Shown: positions 14,736 to 25,165 of the stretch, piece after piece
Layout: every line of letters begins with the position of its first letter
Numbering within the stretch: position 1 is the first letter of the stretch
Sequence record: OR805292.1
Reading direction: 5' to 3' (one strand)
Length of the DNA: 64,000 bases
The notes under the pieces: generated by a model
Databases searched by the model: none
What the model saw: the letters and a program-made list of their open reading frames with translations, nothing else
What the model was told of the DNA's origin: nothing
Position numbers and translations under genes: made by a program

Positions 14736-14812
14736 CCCTCGGTAGCTCAGTTGGTTAGAGCGCGCGACTCATAATCGCTAGGTCACTGGTTCGAATCCAG
14801 TTCGAGGGACCA
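14736..14812 (+). tRNA. tRNA-CAT, Ile2 (lysidine) type, copy 1
   Basis: Full cloverleaf, GCGA-CTCATAA-TCGC arm typical of Ile2, acceptor CCCTCGG/TCGAGGG, encoded CCA. Confidence 0.88.
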
Positions 14813-14834
14813 ATTTTAAGATGTTGTGCTTTTA

Positions 14835-14919
14835 GCCCGAGTGGTGAAATTGGTAGACACAGGAGACTTAAAATCTCCCGCTTCGCAGCGTACCGGTTCG
14901 AGTCCGGTCTCGGGTACCA
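14835..14919 (+). tRNA. tRNA-Leu(TAA), copy 1
   Basis: GGAGA-CTTAAAA-TCTCC arm, long variable arm, CCA. Confidence 0.96.
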
Positions 14920-14969
14920 AACAAAAGATATAAATACTTAACAAGATAGGAAACTATTCTAAAATTAAA

Positions 14970-15045
14970 TGGCTAGTAGCTCAGTTGGTAGAGCAAATGA
15001 CTGTTAATCATTGGGTCGTAGGTTCGAGTCCTACCTAGCCAGCCA
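14970..15045 (+). tRNA. tRNA-Asn(GTT)
   Basis: AATGA-CTGTTAA-TCATT arm, CCA. Confidence 0.96.
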
Positions 15046-15071
15046 ATTACACTTTGTTGTATATTCAATAT

Positions 15072-15147
15072 GCCGTCTTAGCTCAGCTGGTAGAGCAACT
15101 GACTTGTAATCAGTAGGTCGTGAGTTCGAATCCCACAGTCGGCACCA
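15072..15147 (+). tRNA. tRNA-Thr(TGT)
   Basis: ACTGA-CTTGTAA-TCAGT arm, CCA; one mismatch each in acceptor and T stems. Confidence 0.92.
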
Positions 15148-15216
15148 ATTTTAAATAACAGTTGTATCTAAAGAGATACAATAGTCTAAATAAAATATTC
15201 ATATAATGTTTCAAAC

Positions 15217-15293
15217 GGGACTTTAGCTCAGTTGGTTAGAGCGCGCGACTCATAATCGCTAGGTCACTGGTTCGAATCCAGTAAGTCCCACCA
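15217..15293 (+). tRNA. tRNA-CAT, Ile2 (lysidine) type, copy 2
   Basis: 59-nt core identical to copy 1; acceptor GGGACTT/AAGTCCC, CCA. Confidence 0.88.
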
Positions 15294-15343
15294 ATTTTTA
15301 TATACAAATCAAACTATACTTAAACTATATAATGAATGAATAT

Positions 15344-15428
15344 GCCCGGTTGGTGAAATCGGTAGACACAGGAGACTTAAAATCTCCCGACGAAAGTCGT
15401 GCCAGTTCGAGTCTGGCACCGGGCACCA
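15344..15428 (+). tRNA. tRNA-Leu(TAA), copy 2
   Basis: Same anticodon arm as copy 1; acceptor, variable and T arms diverged with pairing retained; CCA. Confidence 0.96.
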
Positions 15429-16307
15429 AACTCCTACAAAAGGAACATATTATAGTATGTTCCTTTTTTATTATGATATTTTTATTATGAATGAAATAAT
15501 GCATATATCTGCCAACACATACGTAATAGAATATCGCGTATTAAACAAGTTAGTAGTCACTATAAAAAATAATAGATCTTTTACATTATGGGTACATTTT
15601 GATATCGGTACATTTTCTATGGCATGGAAATACAATGCAATATAGAATTAAAAAATGAAATACATTATTAATTTACAATACTCAACAGAAGTAATATATA
15701 TGCCGTGTTTCAACATAATATCGTTATGCGATAATAGATCTGTTACTATCCTTTCTATTACTATGATATTTAAGATAAGATACTATTTGCATCCGATGTT
15801 CCGTTATATTCTATAATACATAATATTTTTATTGTAACAAATACCAGAAGTGCTTAGATAATATATAGCAATTCTGTTTATTATCGATATTGCGGTATAC
15901 TTAGTATTTCTTATTAACCGTATTACATAGAATAAAGAATGGAAAAAATTTTAACTATTTCACATAAAACATTAATATGTGAATTGTCGTTATTAAAATT
16001 GTCGAAATCCATAGTTTGTGTTTATTCTGGCGAAATAGTATGGTATGCTCGGCTAGATAAGAATTGTTATGTTGTACGGATAAGATGATGATAATAATGA
16101 ACTGTATTTTTTCCTATTCGTACTATTTAGAACGCATCGTATGTCATGCAAAAATCTACAAAGGGTTTGTAGTCAGTAAAAATACTTTTTGTGAGAAATC
16201 CGTAATAGCTTTATACTTAATAAATAGTGGTAGTTATTTTCATAAATGTTATGTCGATCATTACTTAATTGTATAGATATATATATATATATATTTTAAT
16301 AAAATAG

Positions 16308-22132: not shown

Positions 22133-22168
22133 TAAAACATTGCCCGCTAATGCGGGCAATGTTTTATT
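22131..22168 (+). terminator. Intrinsic terminator
   Basis: AATAAAACATTGCCCGC-taat-GCGGGCAATGTTTTATT. Confidence 0.88.
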
Positions 22169-22238
22169 GTATTTTTATTTTTCTTATGCTATTATACAAA
22201 TAATAAATAATGGACGTTTAATAACAAGGAAATGTTTT

Positions 22239-22469
22239 ATGAGTTCAGAATTTGATATAGATGACAGCGGACTTGCTGAAACCCACGAACAAATTGTAGA
22301 AAAAGCTGTAAGTAAAATACGAAAAGAAATGGCAAGAAATTCTGGCTATACCGAATGTATAGATTGCGGAGAAGAAATAGGAGAAGAAAGAAAACGTATA
22401 CTACCAAGTGCAACAAAATGTGTGGAATGCCAGTCGTTGTTTGATCTGAGAAATAAGTTATACAAATGA
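22239..22469 (+). CDS. TraR/DksA C4 zinc-finger protein
   Basis: CIDCGEEIGEERKRILPSATKCVECQ, acidic N-terminus; start moved to the ATG after an AAGGA SD. Confidence 0.9.
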   Translation: MSSEFDIDDSGLAETHEQIVEKAVSKIRKEMARNSGYTECIDCGEEIGEERKRILPSATKCVECQSLFDLRNKLYK

Positions 22470-23290
22470 ATCTATCATTATTATGTAAATTATCTAGAGT
22501 AGTTAGAAATAGTACAATCGTTATTTCTACTAAATATTCTAATTTTTTTATTTCCATTTTTAATAAAATATATAGTTTAATAAGAATTGACATTGCTTCT
22601 AATTTATCTACATGTTGCTTACTACCAACTGTTATAAACCTATTATTGTTTTGTATAGAAGAAAGAAATGAAAATAAATCTAAAAAAGATAATAACACTA
22701 AACAAACTTAGTGGAACATTATAAGATTATATTTAGAAAACAAATATAACCTGAATGTCTCTAAATTACATTATAACGTATTAATAGATATAATATATTA
22801 AGAATCTAAGCAATAAATATTTGCATATAAGAAGGATTCTAATATGTCATATAATCCAAATTTCAATACCTCTATTATAGGATTATCGTATAATTCTATA
22901 AAATTACATATAGTAGAACATGTACAAAAAGACATAAAAGGTAATACAGTTTACATTATATCATTTGTAAATGATTTTGGATTTATTTTTGCTAAAGTAA
23001 AAACTAAATATGATCCTAAAACTGTCTTATAATGCACGCCAAATATGCATAGAACCAAGTACCATATATACATGTATATGGGTCCGGGGAGAAAAAGGGA
23101 TAGTTTTGTATAGACATATGATTTATGATACAAGATCGATGAGTATAGGTAATTATGATTATACAACTTATATTTCGCATGAAATAGGGGGCTTAGGCTG
23201 GACCAGTTATAAGAATTTAAAAAAATGCTAGATTTCGTTGTTATAAAACAGTATACTAAACACTCAACACATTAACTAGCAGAGGTAAAC

Positions 23291-23440
23291 GTGGATAATA
23301 TCAAATCGTGCAAATGCGCACATGATTTCCAGGATAGTGTGTACGGCAAAGGTAATCGTGTGCATAACGTGTTTACTAAGGGCTATCGTTGCACTGTTTG
23401 CGGTAAAGAAATTATTACTTCTTCCACTGGCAAGAAGTAA
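23291..23440 (+). CDS. Small zinc-ribbon protein (49 aa), below the track cutoff
   Basis: GAGGT SD, GTG start, CKCAH...CTVCG, followed by a terminator. Confidence 0.8.
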   Translation: MDNIKSCKCAHDFQDSVYGKGNRVHNVFTKGYRCTVCGKEIITSSTGKK

Positions 23441-23445
23441 AATAT

Positions 23446-23472
23446 AAAAAAGGGCACATTGTGCCCTTTTTT
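23446..23472 (+). terminator. Intrinsic terminator
   Basis: AAAAAGGGCAC-att-GTGCCCTTTTTT. Confidence 0.85.
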
Positions 23473-23562
23473 AATAGTAAGAAACAAAGTAAGTCATGCA
23501 TTCAACTATCTATAATATACACTGTGCATTCTAATACACAGTGTATTGTTGCGAGTAATTAA

Positions 23563-23784
23563 ATGTCAACAACGCCTAGGGGAAAGAAAACTAAAATAAC
23601 ATGCAATAATATAGAATGTAATAATGTATTCGAAGTAAGAATTGCCGATGTTAAAAGAGGTTGGGGACTATATTGTTCTAAGTCTTGTAAACAAACTGCA
23701 CAAGAGCAGCAACGGCAAATGATAAAAAAATTATCCGGAGAACATTTGTTACCGAAGAATAAACGAAGAAAAAAGTATTGGTAA
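23563..23784 (+). CDS. Small basic zinc-binding protein
   Basis: CNNIEC ... YCSKSC. Confidence 0.65.
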   Translation: MSTTPRGKKTKITCNNIECNNVFEVRIADVKRGWGLYCSKSCKQTAQEQQRQMIKKLSGEHLLPKNKRRKKYW

Positions 23785-24553
23785 GAGGTATAGTATGAGT
23801 TTAATACTAAACTATTCAAATTGTGCAAATACTACAACCATAACTTTTTATATTTTCGGATTAAACATTAAAAAGGCATGGGTATACGTTACAAAGTCAG
23901 ATAAGTATGGTAGGTATTTGTACGTATCTCAAGACGGATGTATGGGTGTCTTTCCTGAATGGCAAATATAATTAAAATGAAACCGGTATTGTACTATGTA
24001 GGTGATAATCCCAAAGGGGCATTTTTGTGCGAAATTTATGGCAAGGAATACCCATTTATCAATAAGGAAACTAGATTTATTAAAGTTAATTCTATTTTTT
24101 ATATATCTTTTATATCTGCCAAGTATACATATATAAAATTTCTAGTTAGATATAGATTTGTTACATGGAGGTTATACGACACTGACATTTATATTTCTTT
24201 TAGTAGAGCTATGACATCCGTTGAGCGGGAAATTAATAAAATAAGAGGAGTTTAAAAAATGCGTTATTTTGCACGTTTGCATTATGCTATACGCAAGTTT
24301 GCAATAACGTGCAAACGCATGTATAACGCTAATACAGCTAACAATACAGTGCATAAAAACATGTACAGCATACTAGCGTTACAACGCATATCGTTGAACC
24401 ATAAATGTATATACATCTGGAGCAATATAGTATTCTTGACAGTCACTATTGATACCTTAATTACATATCACATATATAGAAAAAGTTTGAGAACTGGTTT
24501 AGAGTCGTGTAATTTTTCTTATGTGCATGAATTAGTTTAGAAGGATATTAGGT

Positions 24554-25165
24554 TTGATTAAGTTAGTAAAACCCATTGCATATTATGGACAAAAATTTGG
24601 TATCGCTGTTTCGGGCGGTATTGATTCTATGGTTGCATTGTCCTTCTTAAAGAAATATCCACAAAATAACTTCGATGTCTTTCATGTAAACCACGGATCG
24701 GAGTATGATATTAAAGCAGAGCAATTTGTGAGAGATTATTGTAGCGACAATAAAATAAATTGCCATGTATATTGCATTAACACAAAAAAACCAAAAGGTT
24801 GCAGTTGGGAAGAACATTGGCGAAACGAACGATATAAATTTCTGCACTCTCATGAATTAGAAATCATGACTGCACATACACTAGACGACAACGTAGAGAC
24901 GTGGTTGTTTTATAGTATGCACGGTTCGCCTCGTATCATTCCGTATCGGAAAAAAAATGTCATTCGACCGTTTATGCTTACTACAAAAAACGAATTTAAA
25001 AAATATGCGAAAAGTAATGGTGTACAATGGTTAGAAGATCCTAGTAACCGAGACACTAATTTTAATAGAAATCAAATTCGACATAATATAATTCCTCAAG
25101 CACTTAAAGTAAATCCGGGATTGTTTAAAGTGATTGCAAAAAAAGTAAGAGAAGAGAATGAATAA
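24554..25165 (+). CDS. tilS: tRNA(Ile)-lysidine synthetase, catalytic domain only
   Basis: PP-loop SGGIDS, HVNHG, ERY, TAHTLDDNVET, IRPF, WLEDPSN and RNQIRH. Confidence 0.95.
   Translation: MIKLVKPIAYYGQKFGIAVSGGIDSMVALSFLKKYPQNNFDVFHVNHGSEYDIKAEQFVRDYCSDNKINCHVYCINTKKPKGCSWEEHWRNERYKFLHSHELEIMTAHTLDDNVETWLFYSMHGSPRIIPYRKKNVIRPFMLTTKNEFKKYAKSNGVQWLEDPSNRDTNFNRNQIRHNIIPQALKVNPGLFKVIAKKVREENE

Follow-up and report, generated by a model that had tools for sequence, protein, structure and literature searches.

A catalytic-domain-only TilS and tRNA-Ile2 twins with unlike acceptor stems as a putative AUA-decoding module of a Pseudomonas jumbo phage

The 288-kb genome of the Pseudomonas jumbo phage Cassandra (OR805292.1), from the PA5oct/MIJ3 group, was analysed over a stretch of 64,000 nt, here called the window. 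ARAGORN finds 12 tRNA genes in the window, three of which have the anticodon CAT. Two of these, copies A and B, belong to a six-tRNA unit in which each is followed by a tRNA-Leu(UAA) gene, and the third lies downstream of this unit, as does a short tilS gene (Table 1). RNA-seq contigs span adjacent tRNAs of the cluster.

Table 1. Features of the tRNA and tilS region, in window coordinates
Feature	Position	Strand	Remarks
Promoter-like site TTGCAA-17-TATAAT	14672..14700	+	about 35 nt 5' of the first tRNA; consensus match only
tRNA-Ile2(CAU) copy A	14736..14812	+	acceptor CCCUCGG/UCGAGGG (C1-G72, C3-G70, U4-A69, C5-G68), A73, CCA encoded
tRNA-Leu(UAA) copy A	14835..14919	+	ARAGORN
tRNA-Asn(GUU) and tRNA-Thr(UGU)	14970..15147	+	between the two Ile2-Leu pairs; ARAGORN
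tRNA-Ile2(CAU) copy B	15217..15293	+	acceptor GGGACUU/AAGUCCC (G3-C70, A4-U69, C5-G68), A73, CCA
tRNA-Leu(UAA) copy B	15344..15428	+	ARAGORN
Terminator-like hairpin	15438..15467	+	end of the six-tRNA unit
Third tRNA(CAU), initiator-like	17360..17436	+	C1xA72 mismatch, G2-C71, C3-G70, A29-U41, G30-C40, G31-C39
Shine-Dalgarno-like GAAGGA	24540..24545	+	8 nt 5' of the tilS TTG start
tilS, 203 aa, predicted N-terminal PP-loop catalytic domain only	24554..25165	+	TTG start; SGGIDS (SGGxDS PP-loop motif) at residues 20-25

The duplicated tRNAs of Cassandra are precisely the readers of AUA and UUA. The two copies of tRNA-Leu(UAA) differ in acceptor stem, variable arm and T stem, which is divergence of the ordinary kind. 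In the CAU twins, in contrast, direct reading shows no difference in positions 8-65 (59 nt) or in the ACCA tail, while 12 of the 14 positions of the acceptor stem differ. The only pair that the two stems have in common is 5-68, which is C-G in both; at 4-69 copy A has U-A where copy B has A-U, and neither copy has C4-G69. The chance that 12 substitutions all fall within 14 of 73 sites is, by simple arithmetic, about 2e-9, and it is about 6e-6 when the changes are taken as six events, each on one pair, among some 52 structural units. It follows that the confinement of the differences to the acceptor stem is not the outcome of chance divergence. The first-pass annotation had described an identical 59-nt core with unrelated stems that lack C4-G69. 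The core and the missing C4-G69 agree with our reading, but the stems are not wholly unrelated: C5-G68 is common to both, and copy B (GGGACUU) departs from the bacterial Ile2 consensus GGGCCNN at pair 4-69 as its one difference. Copy A, at C3-G70 and U4-A69, has the pairs of the host tRNA-Met.

Both sequences are stable among relatives. Copy A is invariant in six Wroclawvirus genomes and copy B is 100% identical in 11 phage records. In the six genomes, 4 of 961 tRNA columns vary, none of them in the Ile2 twins, compared with 251 of 3356 columns outside the tRNAs (7.5% in the flanks). The third CAU tRNA has, besides the C1xA72 mismatch, only two G-C pairs in its anticodon stem (30-40 and 31-39), where an initiator tRNA has three in a row, and an atypical D arm. 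It is not another twin, and is likely a non-substrate that the phage TilS must reject. Neither this tRNA nor the twin tRNA-Leu(UAA) genes appeared in the first-pass annotation.

Every database record and both genome papers give the twins as tRNA-Met. If they were elongator tRNA-Met, the PP-loop protein would have to act elsewhere, and we find this scarcely credible, as profile scores, anticodon-stem marks and nearest bacterial relatives all identify the twins as Ile2. Against a profile built from 28 gammaproteobacterial Ile2 bodies the twin body scores 62.6 bits, against one built from 19 Met bodies 39.7 bits, and the Ile2-over-Met score of +22.9 bits lies inside the Ile2 range of 19.3-35.6. 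The anticodon stem has G30-C40 and A31-U39 with a C27.U43 mismatch; G30-C40 together with a non-Watson-Crick 27-43 occurs in 29 of 29 gammaproteobacterial Ile2 tRNAs, and C30-G40 together with C27-G43 in 20 of 20 Met tRNAs. The CAU anticodon sits in a CUCAUAA loop, and position 73 is A. Among the best 30 matches to the twins in 301 Gammaproteobacteria genomes, 26 are CAU tRNAs of the GGGCC type, and the closest E. coli matches carry the PGAP label tRNA-Ile, again against a Met identity. One gammaproteobacterial feature departs from this pattern, namely C4-G69, which is present in 29 of 29 bacterial Ile2 tRNAs, including that of the host proxy, and absent from the twins. Judged by their body alone, both twins are tRNA-Ile2, mislabelled as tRNA-Met in the databases.

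The protein encoded at 24554-25165 matches PF01171 (1.7e-36) and TIGR02432 (lysidine_TilS_N) only, and its TIGR02432 score of 131.4 bits exceeds the equivalog cut-off of 93.6, which also argues against a PP-loop protein with another task. The alignment covers residues 26-228 of 317 in the TilS of A. aeolicus, 22-219 of 464 in that of G. kaustophilus and 16-200 of 433 in that of E. coli, so that the phage protein stops after the N domain, where the linker helix and CTD1 of a type II TilS would follow. Neither PF09179 (CTD1) nor PF11734 (CTD2) was found in the protein or in a six-frame translation of the whole 288-kb genome. Across 26 family members the motifs HTLDDxxE, RP, EDPSN and RNxIR do not vary. 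An AlphaFold model has a pLDDT of 94.3, and its top six Foldseek matches are all TilS (E-values 9e-14 to 1e-10, TMq 0.79-0.83), with 2e21, 1ni5 and 3a2k as the best structures and TM scores on the targets of 0.37-0.55. The open reading frame is thus predicted to encode a TilS that consists of the catalytic domain only. Here, as with the Ile2 identity of the twins, domain searches, alignments and profile scores bear out what the first-pass annotation had proposed. The phage protein has 100% amino acid identity in 11 Wroclawvirus records. The TilS of the host proxy, at 444 aa, has all three domains (PF01171, PF09179 and PF11734); its identity to the phage protein is 25%.

A TilS of about 200 aa is no oddity of one phage but a large natural family, common in uncultured phages. 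We found 743 homologous proteins of this length and at least 544 IMG/VR viral contigs with such a gene, and all of 80 retrieved family ORFs have 195-228 aa. A CAU tRNA lies within 300 nt of tilS on the same strand at 29 of the 80 loci, and this cassette is also present in a CPR MAG, among housekeeping genes, and on a 428-kb contig; such a widespread pairing of TilS with tRNA(CAU) is hard to reconcile with a Met identity of the twins. In other phages, the acceptor stem varies among the CAU tRNAs that adjoin a short tilS. C4-G69 is missing from 8 of 25 such phage tRNAs against 0 of 29 gammaproteobacterial Ile2 tRNAs, a comparison confounded by host taxa. C4-G69 is still present in two thirds of these phage tRNAs and C5-G68 in most, which means that the acceptor stem is under some constraint, and IleRS or host enzymes may be its source. 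Stem-swapped twins as in Cassandra were found in no other phage among the loci examined.

To see what is special about the phage enzyme, consider the two known types of TilS. In type I (E. coli MesJ 1NI5, G. kaustophilus 3A2K, B. cenocepacia, P. aeruginosa) the N domain has the same fold as the phage protein (TM about 0.8) and presumably catalyses the same reaction, but there are three domains, and CTD2 reads acceptor pairs (PMC11947777, PMC12514573). Such enzymes require pairs 3:70/4:69 or 4:69/5:68, and the two type I enzymes that have been assayed both depend on C4-G69 as a major determinant (PMC11947777). In type II (Aquifex aeolicus, PDB 1WY5/2E21/2E89; M. smegmatis, H. pylori) the catalytic PP-loop domain and its motifs are as in the phage, the Aquifex protein being the best match in both sequence and structure. 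As type II enzymes have no CTD2, they must pick tRNA-Ile2 without contact to the acceptor stem (PMC11947777). Yet type II proteins exceed 300 aa and have a long helical linker and CTD1, whereas the phage TilS has neither and stops at a point that corresponds to about residue 228 of 317 in Aquifex. A TilS in the PA5oct/MIJ3 group has been known since 2019: the MIJ3/PA5oct protein (EST35_0433) is 100% identical to that of Cassandra, and was described as the product of an unusual, host-like gene whose role is unknown, in a paper that gives the three CAU tRNAs as Met (PMC6892783). That paper contains no link between enzyme and tRNA, no mention of the missing domains and no wider family; in the papers searched, neither the reassignment of the twins to Ile2 nor a class of domain-less TilS was found. 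Like the twins, the tRNA-Ile2 of T4-like and Stx phages has a CAU anticodon and an Ile2 body and serves AUA decoding in AT-rich phages (PMC1524935), and k2C34 has been observed on a vibriophage tRNA (PMC13191261). Those T4-like and Stx phages, however, have single tRNA copies and no TilS, and C4-G69/C5-G68 is kept in four of the five examined. Recognition through the anticodon arm only, as proposed here for the phage TilS, is known for TadA, MnmA and TGT (PMC12514573), but these differ in fold or chemistry (MnmA being a distant PP-loop relative) and have no near-cognate tRNA with the same anticodon to avoid.

The demand for AUA decoding is high in the phage. Of the Ile codons in this 33% GC genome AUA is the most used, with 36.0 per 1000 codons in the ORFs of the window, where UUA has 25.7 and AUG 22. 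In the host, AUA has 0.9 per 1000 codons and the TilS efficiency is low (Table 1 of PMC12514573). The host genome has 66% GC. The most likely function of the locus is that of a portable AUA-decoding module for an AT-rich phage in a host where AUA is scarce, and we consider it probable that the twin Ile2 tRNAs and the bare catalytic-domain TilS together make up such a kit. The two tRNA-Ile2 genes would be transcribed with a CAU anticodon, the phage TilS would, with ATP and lysine, convert C34 to lysidine, and isoleucyl-tRNA synthetase would then charge the twins, which would read AUA. As the phage TilS lacks CTD1 and CTD2, it should be unable to read the acceptor stem in the type I manner. Its choice of substrate would instead depend on the CUCAUAA anticodon loop and on G30-C40 and the 27-43 mismatch in the stem next to it, so that one enzyme could serve both twins despite their unlike acceptor stems. 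We infer that lysidine is made on the twins, that both are substrates and that the host TilS handles them poorly. That the enzyme ignores the acceptor stem, as had been suggested in the first-pass annotation, is plausible and partly supported by the absence of CTD2 and by the varied stems of tilS-linked tRNAs, 8 of 25 of which lack C4-G69. Deletion of CTD2 from a type I enzyme abolishes acceptor discrimination while rejection of tRNA-Met persists, and it strongly weakened the truncated enzyme (PMC11947777), from which follows that a bare domain might need a partner. No conserved protein neighbour of tilS was found. The distance of 5.6-9.8 kb between tilS and the tRNAs in Cassandra, which are not adjacent, counts against the proposed kit.

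The missing domains also suggest a more radical scheme, proposed with the first-pass annotation, in which a promiscuous TilS lysidinylates host Met tRNAs as well and shifts their decoding from AUG to AUA. All CAU tRNAs concerned have the CUCAUAA loop, save the host-proxy elongator (UUCAUAA). However, the same loop is present in the phage's own initiator-like tRNA, and a promiscuous enzyme would therefore spoil it in a phage that uses AUG as often as given above. The type I enzyme without CTD2 still rejects tRNA-Met. The twins themselves keep the Ile2 marks of the anticodon stem, and G30-C40 is found in 23 of 26 TilS-linked tRNAs, while all 20 Met elongators have C30-G40. In the CPR genome, where the short TilS stands beside a CAU tRNA among housekeeping genes, specificity would be needed. 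The scheme is, accordingly, very improbable. A simpler account is that the host TilS suffices for both twins, that the phage enzyme only adds throughput, needed where a slow host enzyme meets abundant phage tRNA-Ile2, and that the stem differences have nothing to do with TilS. The P. aeruginosa enzyme is indeed among the least efficient orthologues and host AUA is rare (PMC12514573), and T4-like and other phages depend on host enzymes for k2C34 (PMC13191261, PMC1524935). The Acinetobacter phage nACB2, moreover, has an Ile2-like tRNA with a GGGACUU stem and no TilS gene, so some host TilS may accept A4-U69. C4-G69, nevertheless, a major determinant for type I enzymes and present in all 29 gammaproteobacterial Ile2 tRNAs, is missing from both twins, and copy A even carries tRNA-Met pairs at 3-70 and 4-69; we regard this account as unlikely, though of appreciable weight.

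On the other hand, selection may have driven the stems apart and thereby kept at least one copy out of reach of an acceptor-reading host factor. This might be a nuclease or toxin directed at tRNAs, MetRS through mischarging, or a limit on processing. This would be compatible with the proposed kit, and it is favoured by the restriction of all 12 differences to the acceptor stem, the 59-nt body being free of them, and by the invariance of both copies in genomes with 7.5% flank variation. C1-G72, found in 0 of 29 bacterial Ile2 tRNAs, recurs moreover in tRNAs of two other phages with short TilS, one adjoining tilS (L160) and one on the contig of the closest TilS relative (L229). Known cases of escape by phage tRNAs concern anticodon loops and not acceptor stems, the present analysis identified no acceptor-reading host factor, and the twins are so far peculiar to Cassandra's group among the loci examined, which makes selection of this kind quite unlikely. 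The kit itself can also be extended to a broader proposal, about which we are evenly divided: that there is a third, catalytic-domain-only class of TilS in which the anticodon arm alone separates tRNA-Ile2 from tRNA-Met and tRNA-fMet, that with its own tRNA it travels as a two-gene AUA cassette among many uncultured phages and reaches at least one CPR bacterium, and that the Cassandra twins would be a natural demonstration of the irrelevance of the acceptor stem, perhaps having diverged to evade an acceptor-reading host factor.

How a TilS without CTD2 distinguishes tRNA-Ile2 from tRNA-Met has been posed as a question (PMC11947777, PMC12514573). A natural and abundant 203-aa TilS, predicted to fold well and encoded by a culturable phage, makes such discrimination directly testable, and the compact enzyme with its matching tRNA is of possible use in codon-reassignment engineering. 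In the PA5oct group the annotation is corrected in that two "Met" genes are Ile2, and this may explain part of the codon bias not accounted for by the phage tRNAs (PMC7318152). For viruses more widely, the finding defines a widespread module of a gene and a tRNA for the decoding of a rare codon.

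The window has a GC content of 32.6% and matches Pseudomonas phage Cassandra (genus Wroclawvirus; OR805292.1, where window position is record position minus 124000) at 100% identity; its identity to PA5oct, MIJ3, and eight further P. aeruginosa jumbo phage records is 96.6-98.9%. ARAGORN finds 12 tRNA genes in it, all on the + strand and three of them with anticodon CAT. Two of the three, copies A and B, have the same 59 nt between the acceptor strands, the same discriminator A, and the same encoded CCA, and differ at 12 of the 14 acceptor positions, with every change compensated. 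If the 12 changes fell at random, the chance that all would lie within these 14 of 73 sites is about 2e-9, or about 6e-6 when they are counted as six pair events (our own arithmetic). The twin feature itself is real: direct reading bears out the identical core, the differing stems, and the lack of C4-G69 noted in the first-pass annotation. The two stems had also been called unrelated, which describes the 12 changed positions and not C5-G68, the sole acceptor pair common to both; pair 4-69 is U-A in one twin and A-U in the other. When six genomes are compared, 4 of 961 tRNA columns vary, versus 251 of 3356 elsewhere, and both twins are invariant. No twins with identical bodies were found in other phages (80 viral loci and five whole records), and the bodies of an adjacent CAU pair in two of the viral loci (L145/L146) differ.

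Coordinates of features in the window.
Feature	Position	Strand	Details
tRNA copy A	14736-14812	+	acceptor strands CCCTCGG / TCGAGGG
tRNA-Leu(UAA)	14835-14919	+	ARAGORN
tRNA copy B	15217-15293	+	acceptor strands GGGACTT / AAGTCCC
tRNA-Leu(UAA)	15344-15428	+	ARAGORN
third tRNA(CAU), initiator-like	17360-17436	+	C1xA72 mismatch
GDSL-lipase-like ORF	21494-22132		212 aa; PF13472 1.2e-07, PF00657 4.2e-06; hypothetical in record
tilS	24554-25165	+	203 aa; TTG start, GAAGGA 8 nt upstream

The two tRNA-Leu(UAA) genes are almost identical in the D and anticodon arms and have diverged in the acceptor stem (three pairs), the variable arm, and the T stem, which is the pattern of ordinary paralogues. Each follows an Ile2 copy, and this suggests that an Ile2-Leu unit was duplicated long ago. 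The third tRNA(CAU) has only two of the three usual anticodon-stem G-C pairs, a weak D stem, and G11-C24 where A11-U24 is usual. A promoter-like site and a terminator-like hairpin accompany a six-tRNA unit. In RNA-seq from one study of a PA5oct-like phage, contigs span the junctions between copy A and Leu, Thr and copy B, and copy B and Leu; such contigs are silent on levels, ends, and modification, and may include DNA carried over.

Both genome papers and all records label the twins tRNA-Met. Their class can be judged independently of the acceptor stem, since the body pairs 27-43 and 30-40 distinguish Ile2 from Met. G30-C40 together with a non-Watson-Crick 27-43 (G.U, C.U, or U.C) occurs in all 29 Ile2 tRNAs, and C30-G40 together with C27-G43 in all 20 Met elongators, which were gathered by a separate second search; the twins have G30-C40 and C27.U43. 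With profile HMMs made from the bodies only, the twin body scores 62.6 bits as Ile2 and 39.7 bits as Met, and the difference of +22.9 falls among the values for Ile2 (19.3 to 35.6), far from those for Met (-35.4 to -17.5). When the twins are searched against 301 Gammaproteobacteria genomes, GGGCC-type CAU tRNAs take 26 of the 30 best places, and the closest E. coli matches carry the PGAP label tRNA-Ile. One of the 301 genomes is unpublished and enters into nothing but this count. Profile scores and stem marks rule out Met elongators and, with the E. coli labels, identify the twins on sequence grounds as tRNA-Ile2, so that the annotation as Met needs correction.

P. aeruginosa itself being absent from the genome scan, a P. 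paraeruginosa genome was used as host proxy; its CAU tRNAs are one of GGGCCUA type (C4-G69, C5-G68), one of GGCUACA type (elongator Met), and initiators. C4-G69 is present in 29 of 29 bacterial Ile2 genes and in neither twin. Copy B, with GGGACUU, departs from the consensus GGGCCNN at pair 4-69 only, and in copy A, pairs 1 to 3 are inverted, and pairs 3-70 and 4-69 resemble those of the host tRNA-Met. Among the matches listed from a pattern search in 151 Pseudomonadales genomes, no host tRNA has a GGGAC stem, and only one-mismatch stems occur: GGGCC (Ile2), GGGUC (Ile-GAU), and AGGAC (Val-GAC).

In the records of Cassandra and of three sibling phages (178-aa cluster member), the annotated start of tilS is ATG 24629. 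This start must be wrong, because the SGGIDS PP-loop motif is then lost; from the TTG at 24554 the N-terminus aligns with the Met-Ile-Lys/Arg-Leu start of the homologues, and the records should, as we read the gene, be corrected to that codon. The only families matched by the 203-aa protein are PF01171 and TIGR02432, the equivalog for the TilS N domain; in alignments it covers residues 26-228 in the Aquifex enzyme (317 aa), 22-219 in the Geobacillus enzyme (464 aa), and 16-200 in the E. coli enzyme (433 aa). Its confident AlphaFold model (pLDDT 94.3, pTM 0.90) has as its six best PDB matches only TilS structures, matched in the N domain alone (query TM 0.79-0.83, target TM 0.37-0.55). Profiles, alignments, and model all agree with the earlier description of a 203-aa TilS reduced to its catalytic domain. 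The host-proxy TilS is a type I enzyme of 444 aa with PF01171, PF09179, and PF11734, and recent capture of the host enzyme is rejected, as the phage protein shares 25% identity with the N domain of the host-proxy TilS versus 43-56% with the short family. No support was found for a split enzyme, with the missing domains in a separate gene, and this reading is rejected as well: a six-frame search of the complete phage genome (288 kb) gave neither PF09179 nor PF11734, none of the eight ORFs neighbouring tilS has a TilS-related Pfam match (seven are matchless and one is GDSL-lipase-like), and in 80 viral loci the surroundings of tilS contain homologues of no other window ORF from 13 to 32 kb.

The short enzyme belongs to a large family. 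A word search returned 743 homologous proteins, and the best 120 of these are nearly all 195-225 aa long (range 179-253), 43-56% identical to the phage enzyme, and have PF01171 as sole family, save for a related PAPS_reduct match in some. An IMG/VR scan gave at least 544 viral contigs with a short TilS, and among sequenced isolates the close relatives are only the Wroclawvirus group and two uncultured phages of 635-642 kb. All 80 fetched viral loci have complete tilS ORFs (195-228 aa, median 204), 69 have tRNA genes, and 29 have a same-strand CAU tRNA at most 300 nt from tilS, often just 20-85 nt away. A Candidatus Spechtbacterales (CPR) MAG also has this cassette of short TilS and tRNA(CAU), on a contig (L132, 10001-10757) where it lies among genes for MreB, PBP2, GreA, an aminoacyl-tRNA synthetase, and DNA polymerase III, and so does a 428-kb contig of GCA_002581825.1 (L133, 10001-10891), where it adjoins release-factor gene fragments. 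On a 196-kb jumbo-phage-like contig, a short TilS (P0050) has, at a distance of about 3 kb, a PolyA_pol family (CCA-adding-like) gene and a fragment of IS605 OrfB, which hints at broader tRNA-maturation gene sets in such phages. That Cassandra-type phages encode TilS has already been published; in the literature searched we found neither the link to Ile2, nor the missing domains, nor the widespread tilS-tRNA cassette, and no description of a domain-less TilS class, which may exist elsewhere.

In type I enzymes, CTD2 reads pairs 3:70/4:69 in B. cenocepacia and 4:69/5:68 in E. coli, and without it the enzyme no longer discriminates between acceptor stems, yet continues to reject tRNA-Met (PMC11947777). 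A passage in PMC12069591, citing Ikeuchi 2005, names U33, C34, A37, and G27.U43 as further determinants in E. coli. CUCAUAA and A73 are constant in the tRNAs that adjoin short tilS genes, and 23 of 26 have G30-C40. Their pair 4-69 is other than C-G in 8 of 25 cases, versus 0 of 29 bacterial Ile2 genes (Fisher p = 0.001), a comparison that is confounded by host taxa and suggestive only. A4-U69 recurs in GGGACCA, GGAACCA, GGAACGG, and CCGACCU, and C1-G72 starts, absent from all 29 bacterial Ile2 genes, occur three times. Copy A begins in this manner, as do Ile2-like tRNAs with CCGACCU in L229, the IMG/VR contig whose TilS is the closest relative (56% identity), and with CGGCCCC in a further locus, L160. 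Among five phages with an Ile2-like tRNA and no PP-loop gene, four keep C4-G69/C5-G68. The exception is Acinetobacter phage nACB2 (136 kb), where a tRNA annotated as Ile (L135, 61-137) has GGGACUU/AAGUCCC, the very stem of copy B, and a similar T arm; this weakens the case that a phage enzyme is required for such stems. The first-pass proposal that the short TilS ignores the acceptor stem is plausible and has partial support. Drift after release from acceptor-stem reading would not by itself leave the body untouched while the stem takes 12 changes. Selection for a pair of differing stems is a possible explanation, and could serve escape from a stem-reading factor or distinct handling by MetRS, IleRS, or a processing enzyme.

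It had further been proposed that the enzyme might also lysidinylate Met tRNAs. Such rewriting is disfavoured, because the phage has an initiator-like tRNA of its own, the Ile2-specific stem marks are retained, and the same enzyme form is found among bacterial housekeeping genes. The long ORFs of the window use AUA at 36.0 and UUA at 25.7 per 1000 codons; in P. aeruginosa AUA occurs at 0.9 per 1000 codons and is absent from highly expressed genes, and the TilS of this host ranks with the least efficient of those tested (PMC12514573). The duplicated tRNAs are exactly the decoders of AUA and UUA, and most other tRNAs of the window also read A-ending codons. Short TilS and tRNA-Ile2 would most likely function together as a portable AUA-decoding module.
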